Origin: Mytilus californianus
Lineage: Eukaryota
Reading direction: 5' to 3'
Assembly (NCBI RefSeq): GCF_021869535.1
Contig: NW_026262593.1
Coordinates: 50,964,001-51,028,000 of the forward strand
DNA length: 64,000 nt
Position numbers and translations under genes: made by a program. Below, piece after piece: positions 24,867-64,000 of the stretch. The notes under the pieces are model-generated. The model was not told where the DNA came from and made no database searches. It saw only the letters and a program-made list of their open reading frames with translations. Position 1 is the first letter of the stretch. Each line of letters opens with the position of its first letter.

Positions 24867-27866
24867 TTAATTCCGATGCAAAGACCCTATAAGTGAATCA
24901 ATATTAAAGCCAAAATATGCAATCTTTAATGACCTGACAACAGTATCGTAACTATATTCCTTCTTAATAAGTCTGTTTAAAGGTTTTGTTAGCTTTTGAG
25001 GTGAATACTGACATTTTTGTGCTTTGTAAAGAATATTACCATAAAACTTTTGATGTGAAATACCCGAACGTATAAGATGCCTGCATGTTGAGTTATATTT
25101 ACGAATGATGTCCTTTTACCGATGATAAAATTTAGTAAATGTTTTGACTAGTTTATGATATCGAAAACCCTGGTGTAATTATTTTTCAGTAATATATAAA
25201 TTTCTCTCGCTAAAATCTAATACGTTGTTACATACACGAGCGAATCGTACAAGTTGAGATTAAACAGGGGAAGATGGTGACAAGGGAACGTCACCATCTA
25301 AAAATGGATAATTAACGATAGGAAATGAAAAATCATCTCTTTTATCATAAATTTTTGTATTAAGCTTCCCGTTAATGATATAGATATCAAGATTGAGGAA
25401 AGGACAGTGGTCATTGTTAGTATTAGCTTTATTTAAAGTAAGTTCAACAGGATAAATTTCTTTAGTATACATACTGAAGTTGTCATTATTGAGAGCCAAT
25501 ATATCATCCAAATATCTAAAAGTATTGTTAAATTTTTGTATCAGATGTTGTTTCGATGGGTCTTTGCTGATTTTAGTCATAAATTGTAACTCATAACAAT
25601 ACAAAAACAGGTCCGCAATAAGTGGTGCACAGTTAGTCCCCATTGGAATTCCGAAAACTTGACGATATATGGAATCTCCAAAGCGAACAAAAATGTTATC
25701 AAGTAAAAATTCAAGGGCAGATATAGTATCAAATCATGTCTAATTGACATAGCTATTTTGTTTGTTGCTACTAAAAAATGACATAAAAGAGTTTGAACAT
25801 ATGTATTCGCATTCCGACTTTTTAAATGCCCATTTAATTAGGTGTGTGAATTTTTTCTTAATAAGAATATGAGTCAAAGTGGTATATAGGGTAGAAAAAT
25901 CAAAACTTTGAACAGATTCAAAATCACCAATATATGCATGCAATTTATTAAGTACTTCCAACGAGTTTTTGACACTCCAAAAGTAGTTAATTCCACTATT
26001 TTCAAAGGCTTTATTTGAACAATTTATTATCAGGTTTTTGATTGTACCAAGTGTACTAGTAAGTAGAATAGACAATTTAGTAGTGGAACAATGACTTGAA
26101 GACGAAATAAATCTATATTTGTAAGGTGATTTGTGTAGCTTCGGAAGCCAGTACATAGTTGGAACTTTCATTGTATTTGGTTCTGCTTGTAAAGAAGTAG
26201 CTAATAGTTTATGTTTGTTACAGATATCGTTTTCTGAAAATGAAGTCAGTTGGAATGTTGGTGAATTCGTGATTTCCTTTTGCAGAACCTCAATGTAAAA
26301 TTTACGTCAAACTATAATGATATTATTCGCAGCTTTATCAGCCGGGACAAAAACAAATTCCTTGGCTAGTTCTTTTAGTTTATGTTTGATACGAGAGGTA
26401 GGATTTTTATGGTTGTTGTAAAGAGTAAAATGTTCTTTAAAATGTTGTATACGTATATCAACTATCTTCATTACTGAATTAAAAAAAGAGTCCAAAGATT
26501 TTTTGTCAGCTTTTTCCCGTTTTATCCATTTCAAACAGTAAGCACAAAATGAGTCGTGGATGATATTACGACACTCATTCCAATTAAGAATTGACGGGGA
26601 CGATATTTAGGTCCTTTACTGAGGAATGATTTTAACTCTCGGTCGCGAACGATGTTAAGGTCTCCTGTTATAACATGGGAAATGGAGCCATAAGTGTATA
26701 TGGAATTACTACAATTACATGACGGAGGTGTATTTTCACTGATATTTACATCTTTACAGACTTGGCTATAATTAAACACAAATTTTCGGGTAGATTTCTT
26801 GTAAATATAACAAATAAGAGGGAGTTCAGTAATATCAAAATATCCAGGAATTTGTTCTTTAACAGAATGGTCGTTAAAAATATCGGCAATATTTACAAAA
26901 TTAAAACCTTTATTGACATACTTTATTTTAATAAAATGTTTTTTATGATCTTTAGGGCGATCAATTTTGGGAAACAGTTTAGAATAACAATATGCCATTA
27001 TAATTTGAACGATTTCATACTTAGGACTGCAATATGAAATTGTGTTGCAATCCTCTAAAATTTTATTTAATTTATTAATAGGTAAAGAACAGAGCTTGGT
27101 TAATAGATAATGTCTGCCGTTGTTTTTTGAAATAGAAATTAGGTCCGAAATATTTGTATGGTTGGTCCGATATTTTCTTTGATTGCGATTTTTTCTACGC
27201 CCATTACAAACAGTTTTAGAAACTATATTCAAAATGTTAACAGAATCGGTTCTTGATATATTACCAATTCCCATGATATTATCATTAAGACCGAGAGGGT
27301 AGACTGTCTGTAATTTTTTAATCCAATTTAATTCAATTATTTTCCGCGATCGTACAAACTTTGAATGAGATTCACCAGGCTGCTTATTTATTACTTCTAA
27401 AGGTTGAACTGTTAAATATTTAATAGGATGATTGTGCTTTTTAAGATGTTGATAAATGATACTTTTTAATTTATTGGGTCTTTTTTAACACGATACAGGT
27501 GTTCTTGCGTGCGTTTAGATAAATATCGTCCAGTTTCACCTACGTACTGAATACCGCATCCCGGTTTGTTTCATGTGAGTAAATAAATAAATAAATACTG
27601 TTTGTTTTTCAAGTTATATCAGTTTCAAAATTTAAAGAAAATGTGCGACCATTAAACGTAGACCTTACCGTATTGTTGGTGGAAAGACGGGGACATGTAA
27701 GTCATTTTTTGGCATGACACTTATCGATAGAAGGGTAACCACGATTTTTATTGTTAAAAATGTTAGCGATGGTAGTGTTTTTAGATAAGCGATTTTGAAG
27801 ATTGAGACGTGTAGATACCCTTTGAACGAGTTTAGTATTTAATATTTTTCCATTTCTAAGCTTCAT
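24867..27866 (-). pseudogene. Naiad ORF (about 1000 codons, MKLRNGK... to ...SLHRN*), candidate selenoprotein; this copy is disrupted by frameshifts and TAG/TAA stops
   Basis: In-frame TGA codons occur at 27702-27704, 27609-27611, 27571-27573, 26307-26309 and 25734-25736, each in a Cys-type context. Frameshifts lie near 27590, 27480, 26590 and 25270, and a TAG at 25740 replaces a probable Trp. Confidence 0.85.
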
Positions 27867-43402: not shown

Positions 43403-46156
43403 TAGTATACACCTATTGACTGGGTGTAAGGGTAATAGCAAGTTTGTTGTCCCTGAGATACCAACTATTGCTCGAGGCGAAGCCGAGGGCAATAGTTGGT
43501 ATGCGAAGGGACAACAAACTTGCTATTACCCGCACAACCAGTCATTAGGTGTTTTATTATACTGAACAACACAACTTTCAAAGAAATCTTCAAACACCTT
43601 CTGACACATCTAAATTAGCAGAGCTATACCATACTTTTGTACATTGTACAAGTGCATGCTCAGTAGTATTGACACATTTCACCATTTTAGTTTCCTGATG
43701 CATATGGTATCTTAAAAAAATAGTAAACAACATTGTATGGTTTAATGACTGTATTTTCAACAAAATATAACAAGAAACATATAGAATAATAACTGACTCA
43801 CTAAAGTTACTGACTGACTGAATTTACTCACTTCTCGAAATAAAAATGTATATTGGAATTGTTAATGTTTTGTATTGAAAATCCAGACAATGGAAAACGA
43901 AAGTTATTATTTACACCAACTGTTGAACTACATGAGGTGGGAAAAATATTTTGAATGTTTGTCTGATTTGACTCATAGCTTGAAATGTCCTGTAATATTT
44001 GATCAAATTCAACATCATTAGAAAGTAGGCCAAAGCCATTATCACATATTGATGTTGTTGTATCCTGAGTTGTAACTCTTTTTTCTGATAATTCACCATT
44101 CGAACTTGTTGCACTCTGAATAGTTTCACTCAGAATGTTTGACATTTCATGTTTTTAGTACTACTGAGACGCTTGCAATAGGACTTAACTGCTGATTCAG
44201 ATTTCTGGCCGCTATGTCCCATAATGTGTCGAGTTTCAATACCCCCCTCATCCAAGACAGTTATGCATGTAGTGCGTATGCAATGATTTGTGTATCGTCG
44301 AGACAAACCACACTCTTCACTTATTTTAGCCATTAGATTTCCAAGAGTATTTTTTCCAACTGGACTATTGTCATACCATACATCCGCTGATTCTGTAGTT
44401 TAAAATGCATGCTTTGGCCGCTGCCAAAAATCTGTTCTATCTGGATGCAGCTTACTAAAATACTTGGTAAAAGATCTAACAGGGCAATTGGCACTCCCAG
44501 GAAAAAAAGGATAGACACTTTTAATAGATAATTTAAGTTTTACAGATAATTGTTTTTTGGTGTGTTTTATAAGATTTTTATACATTGTTCCTGCAATTTT
44601 TGAGAGAGTTTTGAATTTACTTAATTTCAGTTAAAAGAAATAAACAACTTACACTTTCCCGTAATTTCCTATGTCACATTGCTGATGTTACAGTATTATT
44701 CACAGTAAAAACCAATGTTTGATGATGTCAGTTAAGTTATGTTGATTGACCTCTTGTCAACTGGTGTAACTCATTGAAAAAGATACATGTACATTTCTTA
44801 TATATAATGCTGTCTCATCAGTGAGTCAAGTACAATGTAATTTAAATTTACGATGTATATTCACAGCTACAAATGTACTTTTTTGTAATGATTGTTTTTT
44901 TTTTCTTTTGGTGTAATAAATTTTAAGTTGAAACTTTTAGTTAAAATGTGCATTCATGTACGCACTTATATTGTATATATTACAATGTAAACACTGAACA
45001 TGCATAATGCCATTTAACAAACCAAGAGAGCAGTTTCATTATGACTGGTACCTTAACTTGTTGAACAGTAACTTCAAATGTGAAAGACTCATTATAGTAT
45101 GGATTCAACGTGAACTTCTTTATCATGGTTTAAGCAGCATGTATTTAATCTATTAATCTAAATATTACCAATAAATAATTTACCTGGAATTTCATACATC
45201 CTGCCATCTTGATCATCAACATCTGTAAAGTCGTCCCTTCTATGATTTTTGGTCTGCCGTACCACCTTAACTCTGACATACCGCAGTCCTTTTGCGTCTC
45301 TTTTCAACTCGAAATCATCCCTTTGAACATCCCGGATATTCTCTCTGCCTCTATTACAGAAGTAATACAAATACTAAAAAAACACTCTCTTCTGTAATGC
45401 CTCAGGTGTGTTAAGGGAAAAATGTTCATGTTTATATAATTTCTGTAAGTCTTCAGGACAAATTGGCTCCTTGTGATTAACAGTGGCCTTTCCTTCTTTC
45501 TTCATCGCCACCATCATGGCTTTAAACATATCATATGCAGCATTATAATGTTCACTGTTGATAATGTCTTCTTTTCTTGTTTCGATGAAATGTTTTTGTA
45601 AGCCAAATCTTAGAGTGATAAGTGATTTTTTAGCATATAAAGTACCATCCGTTTTTCTGACCTCCCCATAAAACTGTCGGAGTGTTTTAACAACGTCCTC
45701 TGTACAGGCCTGGTCCAAGTCTTGGATAGTTTTAAATGAACCGTCTTTTTCAAGTAAATAATCTCCGATTATCCGTTTTGCTACTCCAATTACATTTTTT
45801 GTATTTTTCGAATCTCTGTCATAAAGTATTTTAGTAAGATCTACAGGTTGTAATGACGCAAATCTGCTTGCCTCTGCCATACTATGTTTATGTTTTGATC
45901 GTCTGATGTTGTCTTCATGTTTTCGATATTTCAGTGTTTTACCTGACCATGCGAAAAGGTCAGAGAAATACGAATGATAAATGACGTCATTTTTGACCAA
46001 TGAAAAGTAAGTTGGAAGAGTTCGGGAAATCTACTTACGAAACTATTCACCGGGTAAATAGTCTTTGAAACTATTAATTGGCAAATTGTCTTTAGAATGA
46101 AATAGCACAACAATTTCATTTATTTTATATAGAAAAAAACTCTTGAAGTATAATAA
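43403..46156 (-). mobile_element. Crypton-type tyrosine-recombinase DNA transposon (DUF3504/KCTD1-ZMYM-like YR), defective, with a terminal hairpin of about 160 bp
   Basis: The spliced and frameshifted coding region runs 45880 to 43828: MAEASRF...YYFCNRGRENIR...TKNHR...MYEIPG|SANCPV...WYDNSPVGKNTLGNLM...YTNHCIRTT...SGQKSESAVKSY. The intron donor is at 45183 and the hairpin at 43403-43563. Confidence 0.85.
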
Positions 46157-55935: not shown

Positions 55936-56282
55936 ATGTATCAATCATTAAGTAATGACAAAACCTTATAAAGTCATCTCACAACCATATAACGTAGCAT
56001 CAAAATCTCATTAAGTAATACCAATATAATATTTAGTAATGCAAAAACAATATTTCGTATCCTCGTAACTATAGCATGTTGTGACAAAATATCATCATGT
56101 AATTATAAAACTTAATCACGTTATCAATTTTAATTTTATGTTAGAGCGCTAAATAGGTCACCTTTGGCGTTCCATAAAAGTCATACATCTATTATCTTCT
56201 TTAAACATCGTGATCATTACAAGGGTCTAAATATAAATATAAGGAAGGTATACATTTTAACTTTCTCTTCATATTTAATACC

Positions 56283-56999
56283 ATGTCGGGTCTTAGTGCT
56301 GGATTATCAACATTCGCCAGCTGCAACAAAGGAGGTTCAATTCCTCATTTTACGCGGCACTTGCAAAGCCATCCAAATAATTTTGAAGCTTTGACGTGGC
56401 GTGGAAGAGCATATAGTATCATTGGTCAAAAGGATGAAGCATTGGCCGACTTCCGACGAGCGGAAATGCATGGTGTTGGTCCACAAAGGTACCTAGCAGC
56501 GTCGCTGAGGTCCTCCGCGGAAGGAAATGGACAAAAATCAATACAGGCATTATTAAATGCAGTGAAAGCATATCCAAAATGCGGTGAAGCTTGGAGTGAA
56601 ATTGGTTCCCTACAGTTTTCTGCCAAGGCACACGACGAGGCATTACCAACGCTAATAAAAGCTATATTTTGGGGAATCAGAACAGTGAGACACAAAGGCC
56701 ATGGTATTATTGGTCAAACCAACATGTCGGCGACATTTATTATACAAAACATCAAGTACCAAACGCAGAACCTTACTACAATACGGCTGTTACTTCATGC
56801 AACACATTTACCATTGCTCATCTTGGAATAAGCAGATGCAATATTATCAACAAGAATATACCCGAGGCAAAGATGCGCTTTCAGACAGCAAAAGAGTTAA
56901 ACCCAATACTTGTTCAATGGGGAAACTTTGCTGAATTTGAAAAATGTGTTGTTTCAGATTTTTACAAATCTGATACATCTACTGGTCAACGTAATCATG
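56283..56999 (+). CDS. TPR/toxin-like gene, exon 1 (TPR repeats), with a 1-nt frameshift at about 56667-56674
   Basis: The start context is ACCATG. TPR-like helices are FEALTWRGRAYSIIGQKDEALADFRRA, EAWSEIGSLQFSAKAHDEALPTLIKA and, after the shift, HVGDIYYTKHQVPNAEPYYNTA and AHLGISRCNIINKNIPEAKMRFQTAKELNP. The donor G|GTAAGT is at 57000. Confidence 0.75.
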
Positions 57000-58080
57000 G
57001 TAAGTCTCTCAATTTTGACATTTTTTGCTGTGTTGGTGATTGCAGAAGTGCAAAAAACAAACCGTATAATTCTGTCACTAAAGTTTTGCCTAATCATTAA
57101 TAAGAATTGATTCCCAAACATTTTAATTCTTAGTACCAATTGAAAGTGACAATCCTCAATATATATATACATTTATATTTCTCTAATTCTTTGGCAATTT
57201 AACCCTTTTTGAACCTATTGTTTAAAAATAAATAATCAAGGTTTAGTTGCTGATTATCTGAGTAGATGATTGGTAAAGATAAAAGGTAATAAATTTTATC
57301 AGCTCGAAGGACCTGTTAGAAAAATTGATCTTTTACTACAGGGAAATTAAAGCGTTTTTTATCATTTTTTTTCTCCATTTGATCTAGATATGCATAAATG
57401 AAGTGTTTCCGCATCAATTTTGTATGACGTAGAAATGAGGAATGTTAAGGAACTCGAATGGGAATTGATTTACCAATTATGAAAATTTATTTGATATGAT
57501 CATTAGAGAAACATATTCTTACATTGTTACTCATGGATTATAGGATTTATCCAATCTTGATGGGTAAATTATCTAATGTTAACGTCACCGACGAGGCTCG
57601 GACTTAAAAATTAGATAATTAAACTATCTCAATTTTATAAATCCAATGTTAGAATCTATATGTATAAAAGTCTGAAGAAAATTACAAAATAAATGAACCA
57701 GTTAAACTGAATCACAGTCGGTCATGACTATAAGATATTCATGGTCATCATTTTACAGCATTATTACTAAAGAAGGAAATTTGCCAGGTTGTCAGAAAAA
57801 GCACGACCCCCAACCTGTAAGATATATAGTTTCATGTATGCAGATTGTTCTCTAAGTAGCATAATTATACATTCTTTTGTACTCGGAATATGTGTGTGGT
57901 GTACACACGGACAAATTTGTCAATACCATACGATGCACCTTAATTGTATTATATTTTTATTCTAGTTATCTATCATTTATTGTTATTTTGAGATCATTAT
58001 GATATAAATGTTTTTAATTTTTTTTGTTTTCTCTTCTATTCGGGATCTAATGTAAATAAAAGTTATTGCTAATTTTTAAG

Positions 58081-58254
58081 GTGAAGCGACTTCTTCCGTA
58101 GAATCACAGTTTTCCAAAGTCACCATTTCTGAAAAAAATGCCGCTAGTGGATACTCATCATCCAACAGGGTTGTCGGTGCTAGGCAAGGTAAAGTTGGTA
58201 GTAATGGTGGTGGAAATAGAGGCGGCGGAGGAGGAAATGGAGGAGGCAATGATG
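58081..58254 (+). CDS. TPR/toxin-like gene, exon 2 (Ser/Gly-rich linker)
   Basis: TTTTTAAG acceptor and G|GTAAAA donor, 174 nt, phase 1/1. It encodes GEATSSVESQFSK...GSNGGGNRGGGGGNGGGND. Confidence 0.75.
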
Positions 58255-59267
58255 GTAAAAACAAAACGGATACATTTAGTTACTTAGTTGTACTTGAATT
58301 GGTATCAGAGACAGCGTCTGTTATCTACTGAGTATTCCTTACCATATAATTGATTTCATGCATCTGAACATCTGAAGTGTATCCTCTACAATTTAATCAG
58401 CACAAAGTATGGCCTTTTAAGCAACCACTGACATGTTAAATTCTGTTACATTATGTATGACAGTTTATGTGTTCTAGCCCTGAATTATGTGGTTGTAGTT
58501 TATTGTTATCTGCCTATTGCTATTAATACAGCTACTTACAGTTTTTGTTGTTGAATTTTCAGCATTAATAAGGCTGCTGGGTTTTTTGCTTGAATTATTT
58601 AAACTTTTACCAAACCGAAGCCTTTTATAGATTATTATACGCTACCGTATTGGGTTAGTTCTTGTAAAATGCTGAATGGACTTAGTTGACTCAAATCACA
58701 AATGGTACCAGTTCAAATAATAGAAAAGAAATGTATGACGGTCCAAGTTGTCATCATAGATTGTCCAAGTTGTTTCTATATGCAGTCCGAGCTGTCGTTG
58801 AATTGATTTGTTACCGGGGTTGTTTTTTTTTTCGTTTGAAAGTTAAGGGAGAGTACATATAGGGCATGCATAGTGGCAAGATACATTTGTTTCCAGATTA
58901 GCTTAAAAATTTGACAGATTATGATGATTTTGCGTTGATTCATGCGCATGGGAAAATAGTCAAATAAATTTTGAAAAGAACTTAGATCAATTTAATATAG
59001 CTGCCGAAAGATTGTATCTGTATAGGTTTCAAAGGTATTTTAGCTATTTGCAAGACGTTCAATTGACTAGCAACGAAAAGGCATTGTAGTAGATGACAAA
59101 ACTTTCAGTAAGTGGTTTATGAATAAGATGCGAAAGAACAAATGTCTAGATTCTATATTCTAAAATTATCAGAAATATGTGGGTGTGGATATGATTAAGA
59201 TCGGTTTTATAAATATCCTTATAATCCTCATTCTTTAAAACTCAACTTCATATCTCTACATTTGTAG

Positions 59268-59620
59268 GAGGTGATGACGACGATTACGTGTGGAATAAAT
59301 TTAGAAAGACATCAAAAATGACCAAAAAGCATGATGATGGAAGGCAATTCAAGAGAATAGGTGACTCTAAGTATTGGCTGTCTAGAGACAAAGCTGGTCA
59401 TGGTGGGTCTTTTTTCAAGGTCTTTATTGAAAAGGGAAACACATTAGATTTTATAGGATCAGTACCGATAAGAATTTTCCACGAAAAGGTCATTACAGAT
59501 GAGTCGTATCTATTACGCATTTTACACGAAGGTTCTAAGCTTGAGGATTTCAATCTACTTCCAAAACAAGAGTCCCACAAAGGCGAACAGATAAAGATGA
59601 AAGATCTACATGGAGTGTAA
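59268..59620 (+). CDS. TPR/toxin-like gene, exon 3 (putative polymorphic-toxin-like RNase domain)
   Basis: TTTGTAG acceptor in matching phase, with an open frame to TAA. It encodes GDDDDYVWNKFRK...KYWLSRDKAGHGGSFFKVFIEKG...ESHKGEQIKMKDLHGV. Confidence 0.8.
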
Positions 59621-61964
59621 TGCAGTGAGAAGCGGATTAATAACTTACACAGACCACTTTTACTTATACCAATTGCACATTTAACTATGTTTTATCTTAT
59701 CAGTGATTCTGTTATCAATTTTATTTGTTTACATGATTTAATCTAATTTGACATACTGATGTATCTTAATGATGATTATATATTTCAAATCATAATTTTC
59801 AGATATGTACTTGTAATTAATTGTAGTTTTTTAATTATTGTGTTGTATGTATTTTCATGTTGAATATTGCAATTTAACAGATTAAGTCTGGGTAGGTTTG
59901 GCAACATTTAGAATCCTTCAAAATGAGGTCAAAATTGAATAAATTAATTTGATTATTGATAAACTGACTAATTTTTTTTATGAATAATTGCGAAAAAAGC
60001 TCCTAACTTATCTTTTAAACCAGAAAAAAAGGTAACACTTTAAAATACAAGTAGATTACAAGGAGTTTAGAGACTTAGATAATGTGATCTACTTTTGCTG
60101 AATTTATGGTTGTACAATTTAGCATTTAAAGGACATTCATAACCAAAGTCAATTTAATTGTATAAGGTAATAGTTACATAGCCGAACTGCCGCTATTACT
60201 GATAAAGGTTCAGAATGTCTGTCTTACATTTTTGTATAAATGCACCCAATTTGAAGAAAAGAGAGATGGGCATTTATAATTAGGATACAGGTTATAATGA
60301 TTATGTATTATAATATCGTATCTATAGAATAACACTTGAAATGCAATATTAAAGATAGAGGGATATACTTTAGTTATTTTTACACTCTAATGTGCCATTA
60401 TCGGAATGATTGAAACATGACATCTTATATGGGACATCCACTAAGGTCAACTAATTTCCGATATATACGATATTATCGTCTACAGACGTTTCAATATTTC
60501 AATACAATGCTGAACAAACAAACTAAAATAAGAAAATTCATTACGAATTTGCATTTAATGTGTTTCTTAAGAAAATAAATGTCGTTCTGATGAGTAAAAT
60601 ACAGTGTATAAAAACTAAGAAGACATGGTATAATTGCCAATGAGAAAACTGTCCACTAGAGACCTAATATCGTAGAACTAATCAACTATAGGTCACCGTA
60701 CGACTTTTAACAATAAAACAAACTCATACCACAAAGCAAGCTATGATATATAGGTCACGACATCAAGCCTTGATAACTCAAAACATAGTGAAAATTCAAT
60801 CTGTAGCCTATAAATGATAGGAGTTTATCTGTGGTAAATTATTGATTAATTACCGACTTCTTACCGCCAAGTGACAAATATAACATGCATATTTAGGATG
60901 AAATGTTAATGCAATAGACAAATGTCCTCCTATGTTGATGCAGGACATATTTATATCACATAAACATGGTAATTGAATATACATAGAATATTTTTCATTA
61001 GACGGTAACATGTCATCATTCAAACAGGTTTCATACACCTTGGTGTAAATTATTAATTGACTTCAAGAAACTACCCTCAGTAGACTACAAAGCTACTGGT
61101 AACACAAGGTTAATCGTAAGGGGATTTTTCGTTATTGTCACCCCCTTTCCACATGCCTCACGACATTGGAAGACATTGTCATTGTCTCCGTTTGTTCAGC
61201 TAATCTTCCGTTCGACGTAGCAAGTTATTCCTCAGCATATGAGATCGTTTCTACGATATACTTGGTCGGTTTGTTTGTAATTATTTACACTTAAGCATAC
61301 TATACCTGCATTTATATTTCACAATTTCTTCATAAGAATGAAATTAAGGCAATTTTTAAACTATTGAAGTCTTTTGAAATCTTCTAAACGCTTCTACTTT
61401 ATGACGACTCCGTCACCAAAACACCTCCACACTTATAAGGATTGCTTTTTTATGATATGTACTTGTAGTTGACCATGTACATAGTACACCCTGTGAAAGC
61501 AAATTATCGCTAATTTCAGTTGATGATTCGGGTGAGAGTTATTATAAAGTTAACGATCTTTTACAATTGTTGCCAAACTGCACGGTAATGTCAGTCCAAG
61601 ACATTTAGAAAAACTTTTACCACCTTAAGGTTTCGTGTCATCACTCAGGGTAGTTTCACATACACTTATAGTATAATACTGTCATTCAATTACCTTAATT
61701 TTTTAGATGTTCATAGAACTTGCTACAGTTAGATCAATCATACAACAGCCAGTAATATTGTAAAGTATTGTGTAGGCAGCCCTTAGTCTTCTTTCGAAAA
61801 TATAACAATGTATTAAATATGGAGGATGACATTTTGGTATGTTGTAACAATATAGTGTTTTCTATTCTGGAGTATTACACAGTACGAAATATCATATGAA
61901 TGTCAACATCATCAACTAGTCAACTTACTCATATAGCAATGTAATAAAGATGAGCGTGATAAAG

Positions 61965-62240
61965 CACTATACACTACTGTAACAACAGCCCATGAAAAGG
62001 CTGTGAAATGTCTGTGAAATATCACAGGGCCGTGAAAACCCCGTGAAAATACCCTGTGACTTTTGTAAAAAAAATATTTCTAAAGGCCGTGAAAAATATT
62101 TGATGTTAGAAAAAGACCGTGAAATTTCAATATCCCGTGAAAAGGCCGTGATAATTTGTCCTTTCATGCTTAATAAAAAATATCACGGCCTTTTCAATGG
62201 TTGTTAAAACCAGTAAAAAGGCCGTGATATTTTTTCATGT
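61965..62240 (+). repeat. Cluster of about 10 (GG)CCGTGAAA-type subterminal repeats behind a CACTA motif; possible CACTA/EnSpm-like transposon end
   Basis: CACTA occurs at 61965 and 61972. GTGAAA/GTGATA motifs repeat in direct orientation with an inverted pair at about 62181-62235. No partner end is seen. Confidence 0.45.
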
Positions 62241-64000
62241 CAATTTTTTCTTATCCTTATTCAGATTTAAAACATCCCATGTGATTATTGTAATATGGTC
62301 TAATTATTTCCACTCACATTTTTCTAAATATCCTATAAACTTTTCATTATAAATATATATGTCTGTTTAAATATTATTATATGCAATACTACTGTACAGG
62401 ACTGACTTTTAAATGGAACCATTCATTGTTATAATTAATGACTTTGTGCCAATAAATATTTTGTATTTAAAGAAAAGTATTTTGCTTCTCGTCTGTACAT
62501 TATTATAAACAATGTAAACATTAATTTTAATATTGGAACCGAAACATGTGAAAACGAGAACTTCCCGGAATATCAGACGCCGAAGGTCGATTAATATTTA
62601 CTTTATAGATGCAAGACGAGTGACAGCAAGTTTGAGGTAAGTTAAGTTATTAATATTTTATTATTTTATGCATCATATCACCAAAATGTTGATGACGTTT
62701 GTGAGCATTTCTATTGAACTGATTTTCACTGAATTTGCAGAAACCGTGCAAACATGCATGTGATATATTCACTTATATTTGAGTCTGTTGCACCTGATTC
62801 CTTTAATCATTTCGGTTAATGTTTTCTAAGACTTACCGGATCCTTTAAATACGATTACGGTTTTGTTTTGTTTATGTATTTGGGGAAAAAAAGGGGGGGG
62901 GGTCCTTTTCCCCCACACTGGCCACGTAAAAAAATTTGACATTTATGTACAGTATACTACGTAGACATAGACATAGATAATTGGAAATGATTATAATAGC
63001 AATAAGTATCTCTGAAATGGAGTTCACTCTGATAATCAGAGGCGTAACCTTTGAATGTGTCGGGAGCTATTTGAGTATTTTCTGACTTGGCCGTCGGGAC
63101 ACAGAGTTCAAAAGGGATTAATCAGAGGCGTAGCAGGGAAAGTATTTAATATTTGTACGGCAAAATGTCCTTTCTAGAAGGGTTTGTGCCATATCATAAG
63201 AATAATTGGTATGGCAATGAGGTGTTTAAAAAATAATTGGTATGGCAAATGTGCCTGCAGTAAAAGTTGCTACGCCCCAGCTGGCCCCCTGTAAAAAAAA
63301 TTAGCTGTGACTCATTACGGCCACTAAGTCTAGACAAGTTTGGCTTTAGCCATACATATTATTACTTCAAAGAAACATTTAAATTTAATAGTCTGTCTTA
63401 AAAGTGTCTTTAGTCTTTAAAAAAATCAAAAAAAAATAATATAAGTTGACAATACAGAACTTCGTTAACTAATGATGCCATATTGGATAGGGGGCAAATT
63501 TTCTGGAAAATGGTATGAAAATATGGGAAACCCTATGCATGTTTCCAAGTGGCTGTTCTGTTTCAATAATGTTTTTTAGTATTTTTCATACCATTTTCAC
63601 CTCCAGTATGAAAATCTGCCCCCTATTCAATATGGGGTCATTAACCGTGAAGTCCTGTATTGCATGGAATAATATTGTAGCTGTTTTAAGTACATGTATG
63701 TACATAAATGCCAAAAATTAATTTGAATATATAAATAGTTTTTTTATATACATGTATAATATATGTAATTTTTCTTTATTTATTCTAGGAATGAAGAGCA
63801 AAAGGATATAGCAGTCTTTATATAAAATAGTTCAGAAATCCAGTTGGAAAGAAGAGCTTTTCAGTTAAAAGTATTTCCTGGGAATTAACAGGAACTTCTA
63901 TAAATGTTTTTCTGGAATAGTTATTCAAAAGGGCAGTGAAGTGAAGGATTACATTAGACAAATATTGCTGAGGTTGTAAAATCAAACCCAAGAGATATAC

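Follow-up and report, generated by a model that had tools for sequence, protein, structure and literature searches.

A TPR-repeat gene of Mytilus californianus with a last exon of apparent bacterial toxin origin

A toxin tip followed by a downstream immunity gene is the standard anatomy of bacterial polymorphic toxin/immunity systems, and polymorphic-toxin domains are known to have been transferred to eukaryotes (PMC3482391). Among the described families, Ntox21 has the published signature 'K, [DS]xDxxxH, K, RxG[ST], RxxD', and toxins of this type have been proposed to be metal-independent endoribonucleases using His, Asp and Lys (PMC3482391). CdiA-CT(ECL), which consists of a helix and six strands, has 16S ribosomal RNA (rRNA) as its target and a D/D/H/K active site (PMC9086364). 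Among animals, ticks have domesticated interbacterial effectors, the dae amidases (bioRxiv 10.1101/2020.04.10.036376), and in arthropods gene fusions have been described that incorporate horizontally acquired sequence (PMC13389597). Here we describe a gene of the mussel Mytilus californianus (NCBI LOC127720270) that lies within a window of 64,000 nucleotides, the whole stretch of DNA that was analysed (RefSeq assembly GCF_021869535.1, contig NW_026262593.1, positions 50,964,001 to 51,028,000 of the forward strand). It runs from ATG to TAA at window positions 56283-59620 (+) and has three exons and two introns. We read it as a bivalve nuclear gene whose last exon is probably a domesticated bacterial toxin cassette, coding for a putative ribonuclease (RNase) that would work inside the cell as a defensive effector restrained by the TPR part of the protein.

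Set beside the tick dae amidases and the arthropod fusions, the mussel gene has much in common with them: a bacterial antagonism gene in an animal, which has gained introns, been kept for long and become fused to host modules. It differs in that its product would be an RNase and not an amidase, in its pteriomorph bivalve host, in having no signal peptide and in a cassette that has been shuffled onto several N-terminal modules.

Relatives of the exon-3 domain among bacterial toxins

Exon 3 encodes 116 amino acids (aa), with an isoelectric point of 9.7 downstream of its poly-Asp run. Searches of Pfam, NCBIfam, PADLOC and PDB sequences with exon 3 gave no match, no Pfam or NCBIfam model covers the domain, and a HMMER search of 1.84 billion representative proteins recovered just 15 clusters. 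Conservation was counted over 52 sequences (36 bacterial-type and 16 animal-type). Using exon-3 numbering, H44, K50 and K99 are found in 52/52 and S38 and D40 in 51/52, whilst W36, G43, G45, S47, L59, G105 and I108 are present in at least 85% of the sequences; M. californianus exon 3 keeps every conserved column. The C-terminal domain of about 110 aa with a [DS]xDxxxH motif and a following lysine, which a first-pass annotation made from the letters of the window had pointed out, is therefore present and near-invariant across the 52 sequences, and translation of positions 59372-59425 gives the same peptide that was reported there. An AlphaFold2 model of the domain, built on an alignment of the relatives in the 15 clusters, has a pLDDT of 88.5 and a pTM of 0.82, and the predicted order of elements is an N-terminal helix, five strands, a two-helix insert and two short strands. 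The helical insert is lacking in the bacterial forms and in the short animal forms (oyster P0011, Mytilus P0009 and P0030).

The bacterial relatives carry the domain at the end of recognisable toxins. One protein of 629 aa (P0031) has a DUF637 region of the CdiA/haemagglutinin type and then the domain at its end, with profile E-values down to 1e-26, and both P0033 and the L033 locus have a pretoxin HINT (PT-HINT) region and then the domain. A pattern scan with the bacterial-only alignment over one genome per bacterial species (GTDB) yielded 28 loci, which cover at least nine phyla or classes: Myxococcota, Bdellovibrionota, Alpha-, Beta- and Gammaproteobacteria, Cyanobacteria, Actinobacteria, Planctomycetota and Bacillota. 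Rickettsiales and Midichloriaceae copies are among the Alphaproteobacteria, Aquabacterium, Pantoea, Kluyvera, Scandinavium, Yokenella and Pseudomonas among the Beta- and Gammaproteobacteria, Frankia, Gordonia and Streptomyces among the Actinobacteria, and Brevibacillus among the Bacillota. The domain ends 0-12 aa from the stop codon in 27 of the 28 loci and is frequently the terminal part of an open reading frame (ORF) of >1000 aa. RHS repeats followed by the domain were seen in L017, L021, L028, L030, L037 and L040, with a match to the RHS core in L017, L028, L030 and L037, and some of the long ORFs have ricin-lectin and PT-HINT regions upstream of it. Solved Rhs structures match the Rhs core of the Yokenella locus (L038) as far as the DPLG cleavage site, and the tip beyond that site is without a solved relative.

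An abutting or overlapping downstream ORF was found at every bacterial locus checked (31/31). In 22 of these it belongs to a single family of about 135 aa with LRV/HEAT-like repeats, the others including four members of a family of about 165 aa without a Pfam match, three DUF6980 ORFs and one DUF3885 ORF. Some settings are more particular: P0008 belongs to an orphan toxin array, in which it comes right after a toxin ending in a colicin-E3-type 'Cytotoxic' (PF09000) domain and a DUF7683 ORF; the Frankia toxin sits after a gene with a weak match to a type VII secretion system (T7SS) signal and before an LRV-type ORF; and in P0029, from a Planctomycetes metagenome-assembled genome (MAG), toxin and LRV partner are found within a single ORF. 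A further candidate relative, the 2157-aa P0012 from a gammaproteobacterial MAG, was set aside, its matches being weak and repeated and without toxin-family support.

Since the relatives of exon 3 have the standard anatomy of toxin/immunity systems, we take the domain to be a bacterial toxin tip, and on these sequence comparisons its bacterial-toxin origin is strongly supported. The first-pass annotation had suggested such an origin, and this part of it is borne out by relatives that are C-terminal tips of Rhs, CdiA-like and PT-HINT toxins with an immunity-type ORF downstream. The mussel domain and the Rhs, CdiA and PT-HINT tips have in common clear sequence homology, the same invariant S/D/H/K/K set and a core of about 65 aa. 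Unlike those toxins the mussel gene has introns, and it lacks a delivery part of the Rhs, filamentous-haemagglutinin or HINT kind, a secretion signal and an immunity gene; its protein also has the helical insert of about 27 aa and, at the N-terminus, a module made up of TPR repeats, Gly linker and poly-Asp.

Structure of the mussel gene and its counterparts in bivalves

The splice model was tested by placing the exon pieces on database proteins, exons and frame pieces being searched singly. The NCBI product of the locus (P0016, 217 aa, 'uncharacterized protein LOC127720270') is 100% identical to the exon pieces, and these tile P0016 as well as P0018 and P0017, the orthologues of 414 aa, with a single Gly per junction. 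The phases agree, since each of the two junctions falls after the first base of a codon. E-values of 2.6e-61 and 9.2e-43 obtained with phmmer against the 1.84 billion representative proteins argue that the similarity is not due to chance. Colinearity of the window with the loci of M. coruscus (L011) and M. galloprovincialis (L012) extends over exons, introns and 3' flank. All three coding blocks and the splice dinucleotides recur in these loci, including a GT directly after exon 1. The three-exon model with canonical, phase-consistent splice sites that had been drawn from the window is accordingly right, as are its Gly-rich linker and its acidic run, which correspond to exon 2 and to the poly-Asp stretch that opens exon 3 (Table 1). 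Its length of about 414 aa is that of the intact orthologues and not that of the M. californianus copy.

TPR repeats are certainly present in exon 1 by sequence comparison, in line with the TPR-like repeats that had been noticed in the first-pass annotation. The first frame piece passes the Pfam cut-offs for TPR_16 (39.7 bits, E 6.7e-10; cut-off 32.7), TPR_1 (31.8 bits, E 1.1e-7; cut-off 27.8) and TPR_17 (26.3 bits; cut-off 24.4), the second has weak matches to TPR-containing NCBIfam models, and the best PDB sequence matches of the intact orthologue in this region are generic TPR proteins with weak E-values. A simple hydropathy check of the TPR proteins revealed no evident signal peptide, as had also been thought. 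Derivation of the TPR module from the LRV/HEAT-like partner of the bacterial toxins was considered and rejected (hmmsearch E 0.97, hhalign probability 0.1).

Table 1. Features of the TPR-toxin gene in the M. californianus window
Feature	Position	Strand	Remarks
Whole gene	56283..59620	+	Start to stop codon; exon 1 frameshifted once; 414-aa orthologues in M. coruscus and M. galloprovincialis
Exon 1, TPR-repeat module	56283..56999	+	ATG at 56283, GT donor at 57000; two overlapping frames here
Intron 1	57000..58080	+	GT...AG, phase 1; same position in M. coruscus and M. galloprovincialis
Exon 2, Ser/Gly-rich linker	58081..58254	+	AG at 58079-80, GT at 58255-56; 26% Gly
Intron 2	58255..59267	+	GT...AG, phase 1; immediately 5' of the poly-Asp run
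Exon 3, poly-Asp run and putatively toxin-derived domain of about 110 aa	59268..59620	+	AG at 59266-67, TAA at 59618-20; one-exon cassette
NCBI model LOC127720270, coding range	56873..59620	+	217 aa, 2748 nt; begins at an internal Met of exon 1; same two introns
Motif S38-x-D40-x3-H44 ... K50 (exon-3 numbering)	59381..59419	+	Conservation across 52 sequences
Helical insert of about 27-29 residues	59465..59551	+	From the alignment; helices at residues 72-76 and 78-86 in the model
Second invariant lysine, K99	59564..59566	+	52/52 sequences

M. coruscus and M. galloprovincialis have intact orthologues of 414 aa (P0018 and P0017, with 97% and 88% identity, respectively, in the last exon), and the M. 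edulis models are shorter (P0001 and P0019, 317 and 335 aa). The named animal matches are confined to five Mytilus species and the oyster Saccostrea cucullata, and further animal-type sequences from read-archive and metagenome assemblies cluster with those of Mytilus and the oyster. Neighbour-joining on the trimmed domain set all 16 animal-type sequences apart from all 36 bacterial ones in 95/100 bootstraps, a split that fits one acquisition. The oyster protein P0011 has TPR repeats, Gly linker, poly-Asp run and domain in the same order. The oyster gene (L041) and the Mytilus TPR genes have the intron just before the poly-Asp run in common with a TPR-less Mytilus paralogue of 154 aa (L042), so that poly-Asp run and domain behave as a one-exon cassette. 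Behind other N-termini, the cassette follows a short stretch of 60 aa in the 154-aa Mytilus proteins P0009 and P0030 (L042) and is joined to a fibrinogen C-terminal domain in the M. coruscus models P0024 and P0035, which may be merged gene models. Introns, host-like base composition, a gene order common to three Mytilus species, an oyster orthologue and a single animal clade together fit the horizontal acquisition and later domestication of a toxin that the first-pass annotation had put forward.

Base composition is even across the window (GC about 32% throughout, no N) and GC is comparable in the orthologous loci; long ORFs are scarce, as expected for animal DNA. The NCBI annotation calls no further gene within 10 kb on either side of LOC127720270. 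A search for a second copy of the toxin-like domain found none in the window, homologues of the bacterial partner ORFs were absent from the window, L011 and L012, and a scan for bacterial promoters and terminators, like a count of AATAAA, was uninformative in the AT-rich DNA of the window.

Several further observations concern the gene and its relatives. The 5' part of exon 1 (56283-56666) has a synonymous divergence (dS) of about 0.42 to both orthologues, compared with 0.08-0.20 elsewhere (56834-59617), and it is closer to M. edulis P0001 than to the M. coruscus and M. galloprovincialis orthologues. Such a pattern points to gene conversion or to a mosaic of lineages, allelic or paralogous. 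In M. galloprovincialis a second, diverged toxin-like domain lies about 2.5 kb downstream in opposite orientation (L012:12447-12767 (-)); it is 47-49% identical, with one stop in the stretch read, and colinearity with the window stops just before it. This second copy is missing from the window (59621-64000) and from the M. coruscus locus, which looks like presence/absence variation. A Logan contig (L043:1-1067, SRR30826389) contains an uninterrupted ORF with an N-terminal part, Ser/Gly linker, poly-Asp run and domain, bordered by flanks that resemble untranslated regions (UTRs), and has no intron where the genomic copies carry one; by its sequence it looks like a spliced transcript of a relative of the TPR-toxin gene. 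Mobile elements were also noted, a DDE_Tnp_4 transposase gene near the M. coruscus locus (L011:12340-15856) and a retrotransposon pol gene (RVT, RNase H, integrase) adjoining the oyster gene (L041:8097-11319). In the window itself, two short arrays of 21-bp tandem repeats lie at 55950-56059, 220-330 bp upstream of the start codon. A 208-aa ORF at 45374-46000 (-) has a QRICH1 domain match (Pfam E 1.2e-7) and no relation to the TPR-toxin gene, and three consecutive ORFs of 127, 143 and 247 aa at 25260-27274 (-) are without a Pfam match.

Proposed activity and the alternatives to it

In bacteria the domain of about 65 aa would serve as the C-terminal killing module of polymorphic toxins and be neutralised by the immunity protein encoded just downstream. 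An ancestor of mussels and oysters would have acquired it once, after which, together with the poly-Asp run, it would have come to occupy one exon preceded by a phase-1 intron, and this cassette would then have been joined to various N-terminal modules, here a TPR array by way of the Gly-rich linker. The Ntox21-like motif, the small, basic, beta-rich fold and the toxin context suggest that the domain may act as a metal-independent endoribonuclease through His44, Asp40 and the lysines. Within the animal it would be an intracellular effector. Because no immunity gene came along, the TPR module may hold or target the domain, with the Gly/poly-Asp linker as a possible release or masking element, and use in defence could take the form of translation shutdown in infected cells or of action against bacteria. 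We infer both the sensor or autoinhibitor role of the TPR part and a cytosolic location. A broader and rather unlikely picture is that of an innate-immune effector family of pteriomorph bivalves assembled by exon shuffling, in which the cassette lies behind TPR repeats, possibly fibrinogen-related domains and short hydrophobic N-termini, is kept inactive in cis by either its N-terminal module or the acidic linker, and is freed on infection to stop translation.

Several results count against the reading of a domesticated, RNase-type toxin cassette, and we weigh them here with the alternatives on which they bear. The first-pass annotation had tied the domain to Ntox21, CdiA-CT and colicin E3, and if it truly belonged to that lineage it would be expected to cleave small-subunit rRNA at the decoding centre; we regard this as improbable. 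S38-x-D40-x3-H44 together with K50 is an exact fit to the [DS]xDxxxH, K part of the Ntox21 signature, but its RxG[ST] and RxxD elements have no counterpart among the conserved columns, with no Arg column conserved at >=85% in the 52 sequences. Ntox21 (PF15526) is likewise the sole Pfam toxin family matched by relatives of the domain (P0008, P0013, P0022, P0029 and P0032), always on the motif stretch, yet these five matches score 12.7-15.6 bits (E 0.02-0.17), 9-12 bits under the gathering cut-off of 25 bits, and mussel exon 3 itself has no match to the Pfam Ntox21 model. The scanned partner ORFs (LRV/HEAT-like, DUF6980, DUF3885) differ from those reported for Ntox21, and its partners Imm-Barstar and Imm41 (PMC3482391) were not among them. 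As to fold, the small domain of the exon-3 model has a helix-then-strands order that resembles that of CdiA-CT(ECL) (PMC9086364), a likeness that is not diagnostic. The E. cloacae CdiA-CT(ECL) structure (PDB 4NTQ; 4ntq_A) has the highest probability in the Foldseek list for this model, 0.25, at rank 26 and with an E-value of 2.2, which is not significant; its alignment has a TM of 0.29 on the query and 0.42 on the target with 24% identity over 46 columns, and the structure is unlisted for the short-form model. More generally, Foldseek, run with the exon-3 model against PDB and BFVD and with the short-form model against PDB, returned nothing at E<=0.001, so that the fold comparison proposed in the first-pass annotation gave no significant match, Ntox21/CdiA-CT and colicin E3 included, and profiles of three family alignments had chance-level matches only among PDB sequences. 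Colicin E3 (PF09000) is comparable as a small basic domain at polymorphic-toxin tips, and a PF09000 toxin occurs in the locus of P0008; for the mussel domain and its relatives, however, hmmscan, PDB sequence and profile searches and Foldseek gave no match to it, and hhalign of the family alignment against the colicin-E3-type PF09000 domain from L002 gave a probability of 0.1, that is, no similarity. The proposed link is not supported by these comparisons, and by its sequence we have placed the exon-3 domain outside Ntox21, in a toxin-tip family of its own that has an Ntox21-like motif and is as yet unmodelled. The RNase assignment is drawn from a short motif and from context, and the literature found reports no activity for any member of the exon-3 family. 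It is conceivable, if doubtful, that the domain is toxin-derived and has another target (DNA, nucleotide, protein or membrane) or a non-toxic regulatory use in bivalves. The lack of a significant nuclease fold match would agree with this, as would the precedent of other animal-acquired toxin domains that lost catalysis or turned into signalling proteins (PMC3482391). The animal copies, on the other hand, keep all residues that are invariant in the bacterial toxins, which argues that catalysis has been retained, and in its small size, basic character and His/Asp/Lys set the domain resembles metal-independent RNase toxins (PMC3482391).

No evidence was found that the toxin-like exon is bacterial contamination or the product of a chimeric assembly. 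Either would have to account for GT-AG spliceosomal introns with matching phases and a GC content of 32% throughout, when bacterial loci are intron-free with 34-66% GC, and for the same genomic setting in three independently assembled Mytilus genomes together with an oyster orthologue; introns, base composition and common gene order exclude this explanation, to which we give next to no credence. The direction of transfer is a point on which the domesticated-cassette reading is weaker. The first-pass annotation had proposed a tree with nesting among bacteria as a check; the animal copies do form one clade (95/100), but the tree is unrooted and has a clean animal/bacterial split without nesting, so the direction is drawn from the broad bacterial and narrow animal distribution alone. 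A further point against it is the uneven constraint on the gene. The ratio of non-synonymous to synonymous divergence (dN/dS) in exon 3 is 0.16 versus M. coruscus and 0.70 versus M. galloprovincialis, and in the 3' part of exon 1 it is 0.95-1.27, all on small counts; the value of 0.70 and those for exon 1 make constraint weak or uneven. The last is the frameshift in exon 1. In nucleotide alignments against either orthologue, exon 1 has exactly one internal gap whose length is not a multiple of 3, and since this frame-breaking indel lies outside any homopolymer run, it does not match the most common type of long-read error and may be a genuine defect of the M. californianus copy. The first-pass annotation had noticed the break and treated it as correctable; the single break is confirmed against two orthologues, but as the sequence stands it precludes the full TPR-toxin protein, and the copy as assembled can on its sequence encode at most a product of 217 aa with a TPR remnant, the linker and the domain. 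There is, in our view, a serious though lesser chance that the copy is decaying or dispensable, the frameshift being real, the full protein not made and little or no function left in the sequenced individual, while the gene may still work in other mussels. The NCBI model, shortened to 217 aa and begun at an internal Met, would agree with decay, as would the dN/dS near 1 in the 3' part of exon 1, the M. edulis models, which are shortened too, and the adjacent paralogue that is present in M. galloprovincialis and not in the M. californianus window. Yet this is just one break in a gene whose exons 2 and 3 are intact and keep all conserved residues, with a dN/dS of 0.16-0.18 versus M. coruscus, and an assembly error or a heterozygous allele is an alternative source of the frameshift.

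Significance

The literature search found no paper on the exon-3 domain, its LRV/HEAT-like partner or the bivalve TPR-toxin fusion, and public records label the bivalve proteins uncharacterised. What is new on the bacterial side is a widespread toxin-tip family without a Pfam or NCBIfam model, which has a dominant LRV/HEAT-like partner and occurs at the end of Rhs, CdiA-like and HINT toxins across nine or more phyla or classes. On the animal side it is the apparent capture of such a weapon, previously undescribed and so old that mussels and an oyster both have it, in which all conserved residues of the bacterial toxins have been kept and the captured domain has been fused to a TPR array without any immunity gene. 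The gene would thereby extend the short list of interbacterial toxins domesticated by animals, and it raises the question of how an unshielded toxin domain is controlled in a eukaryotic cell. In Mytilus it is also a potential marker of presence/absence variation in immune genes.

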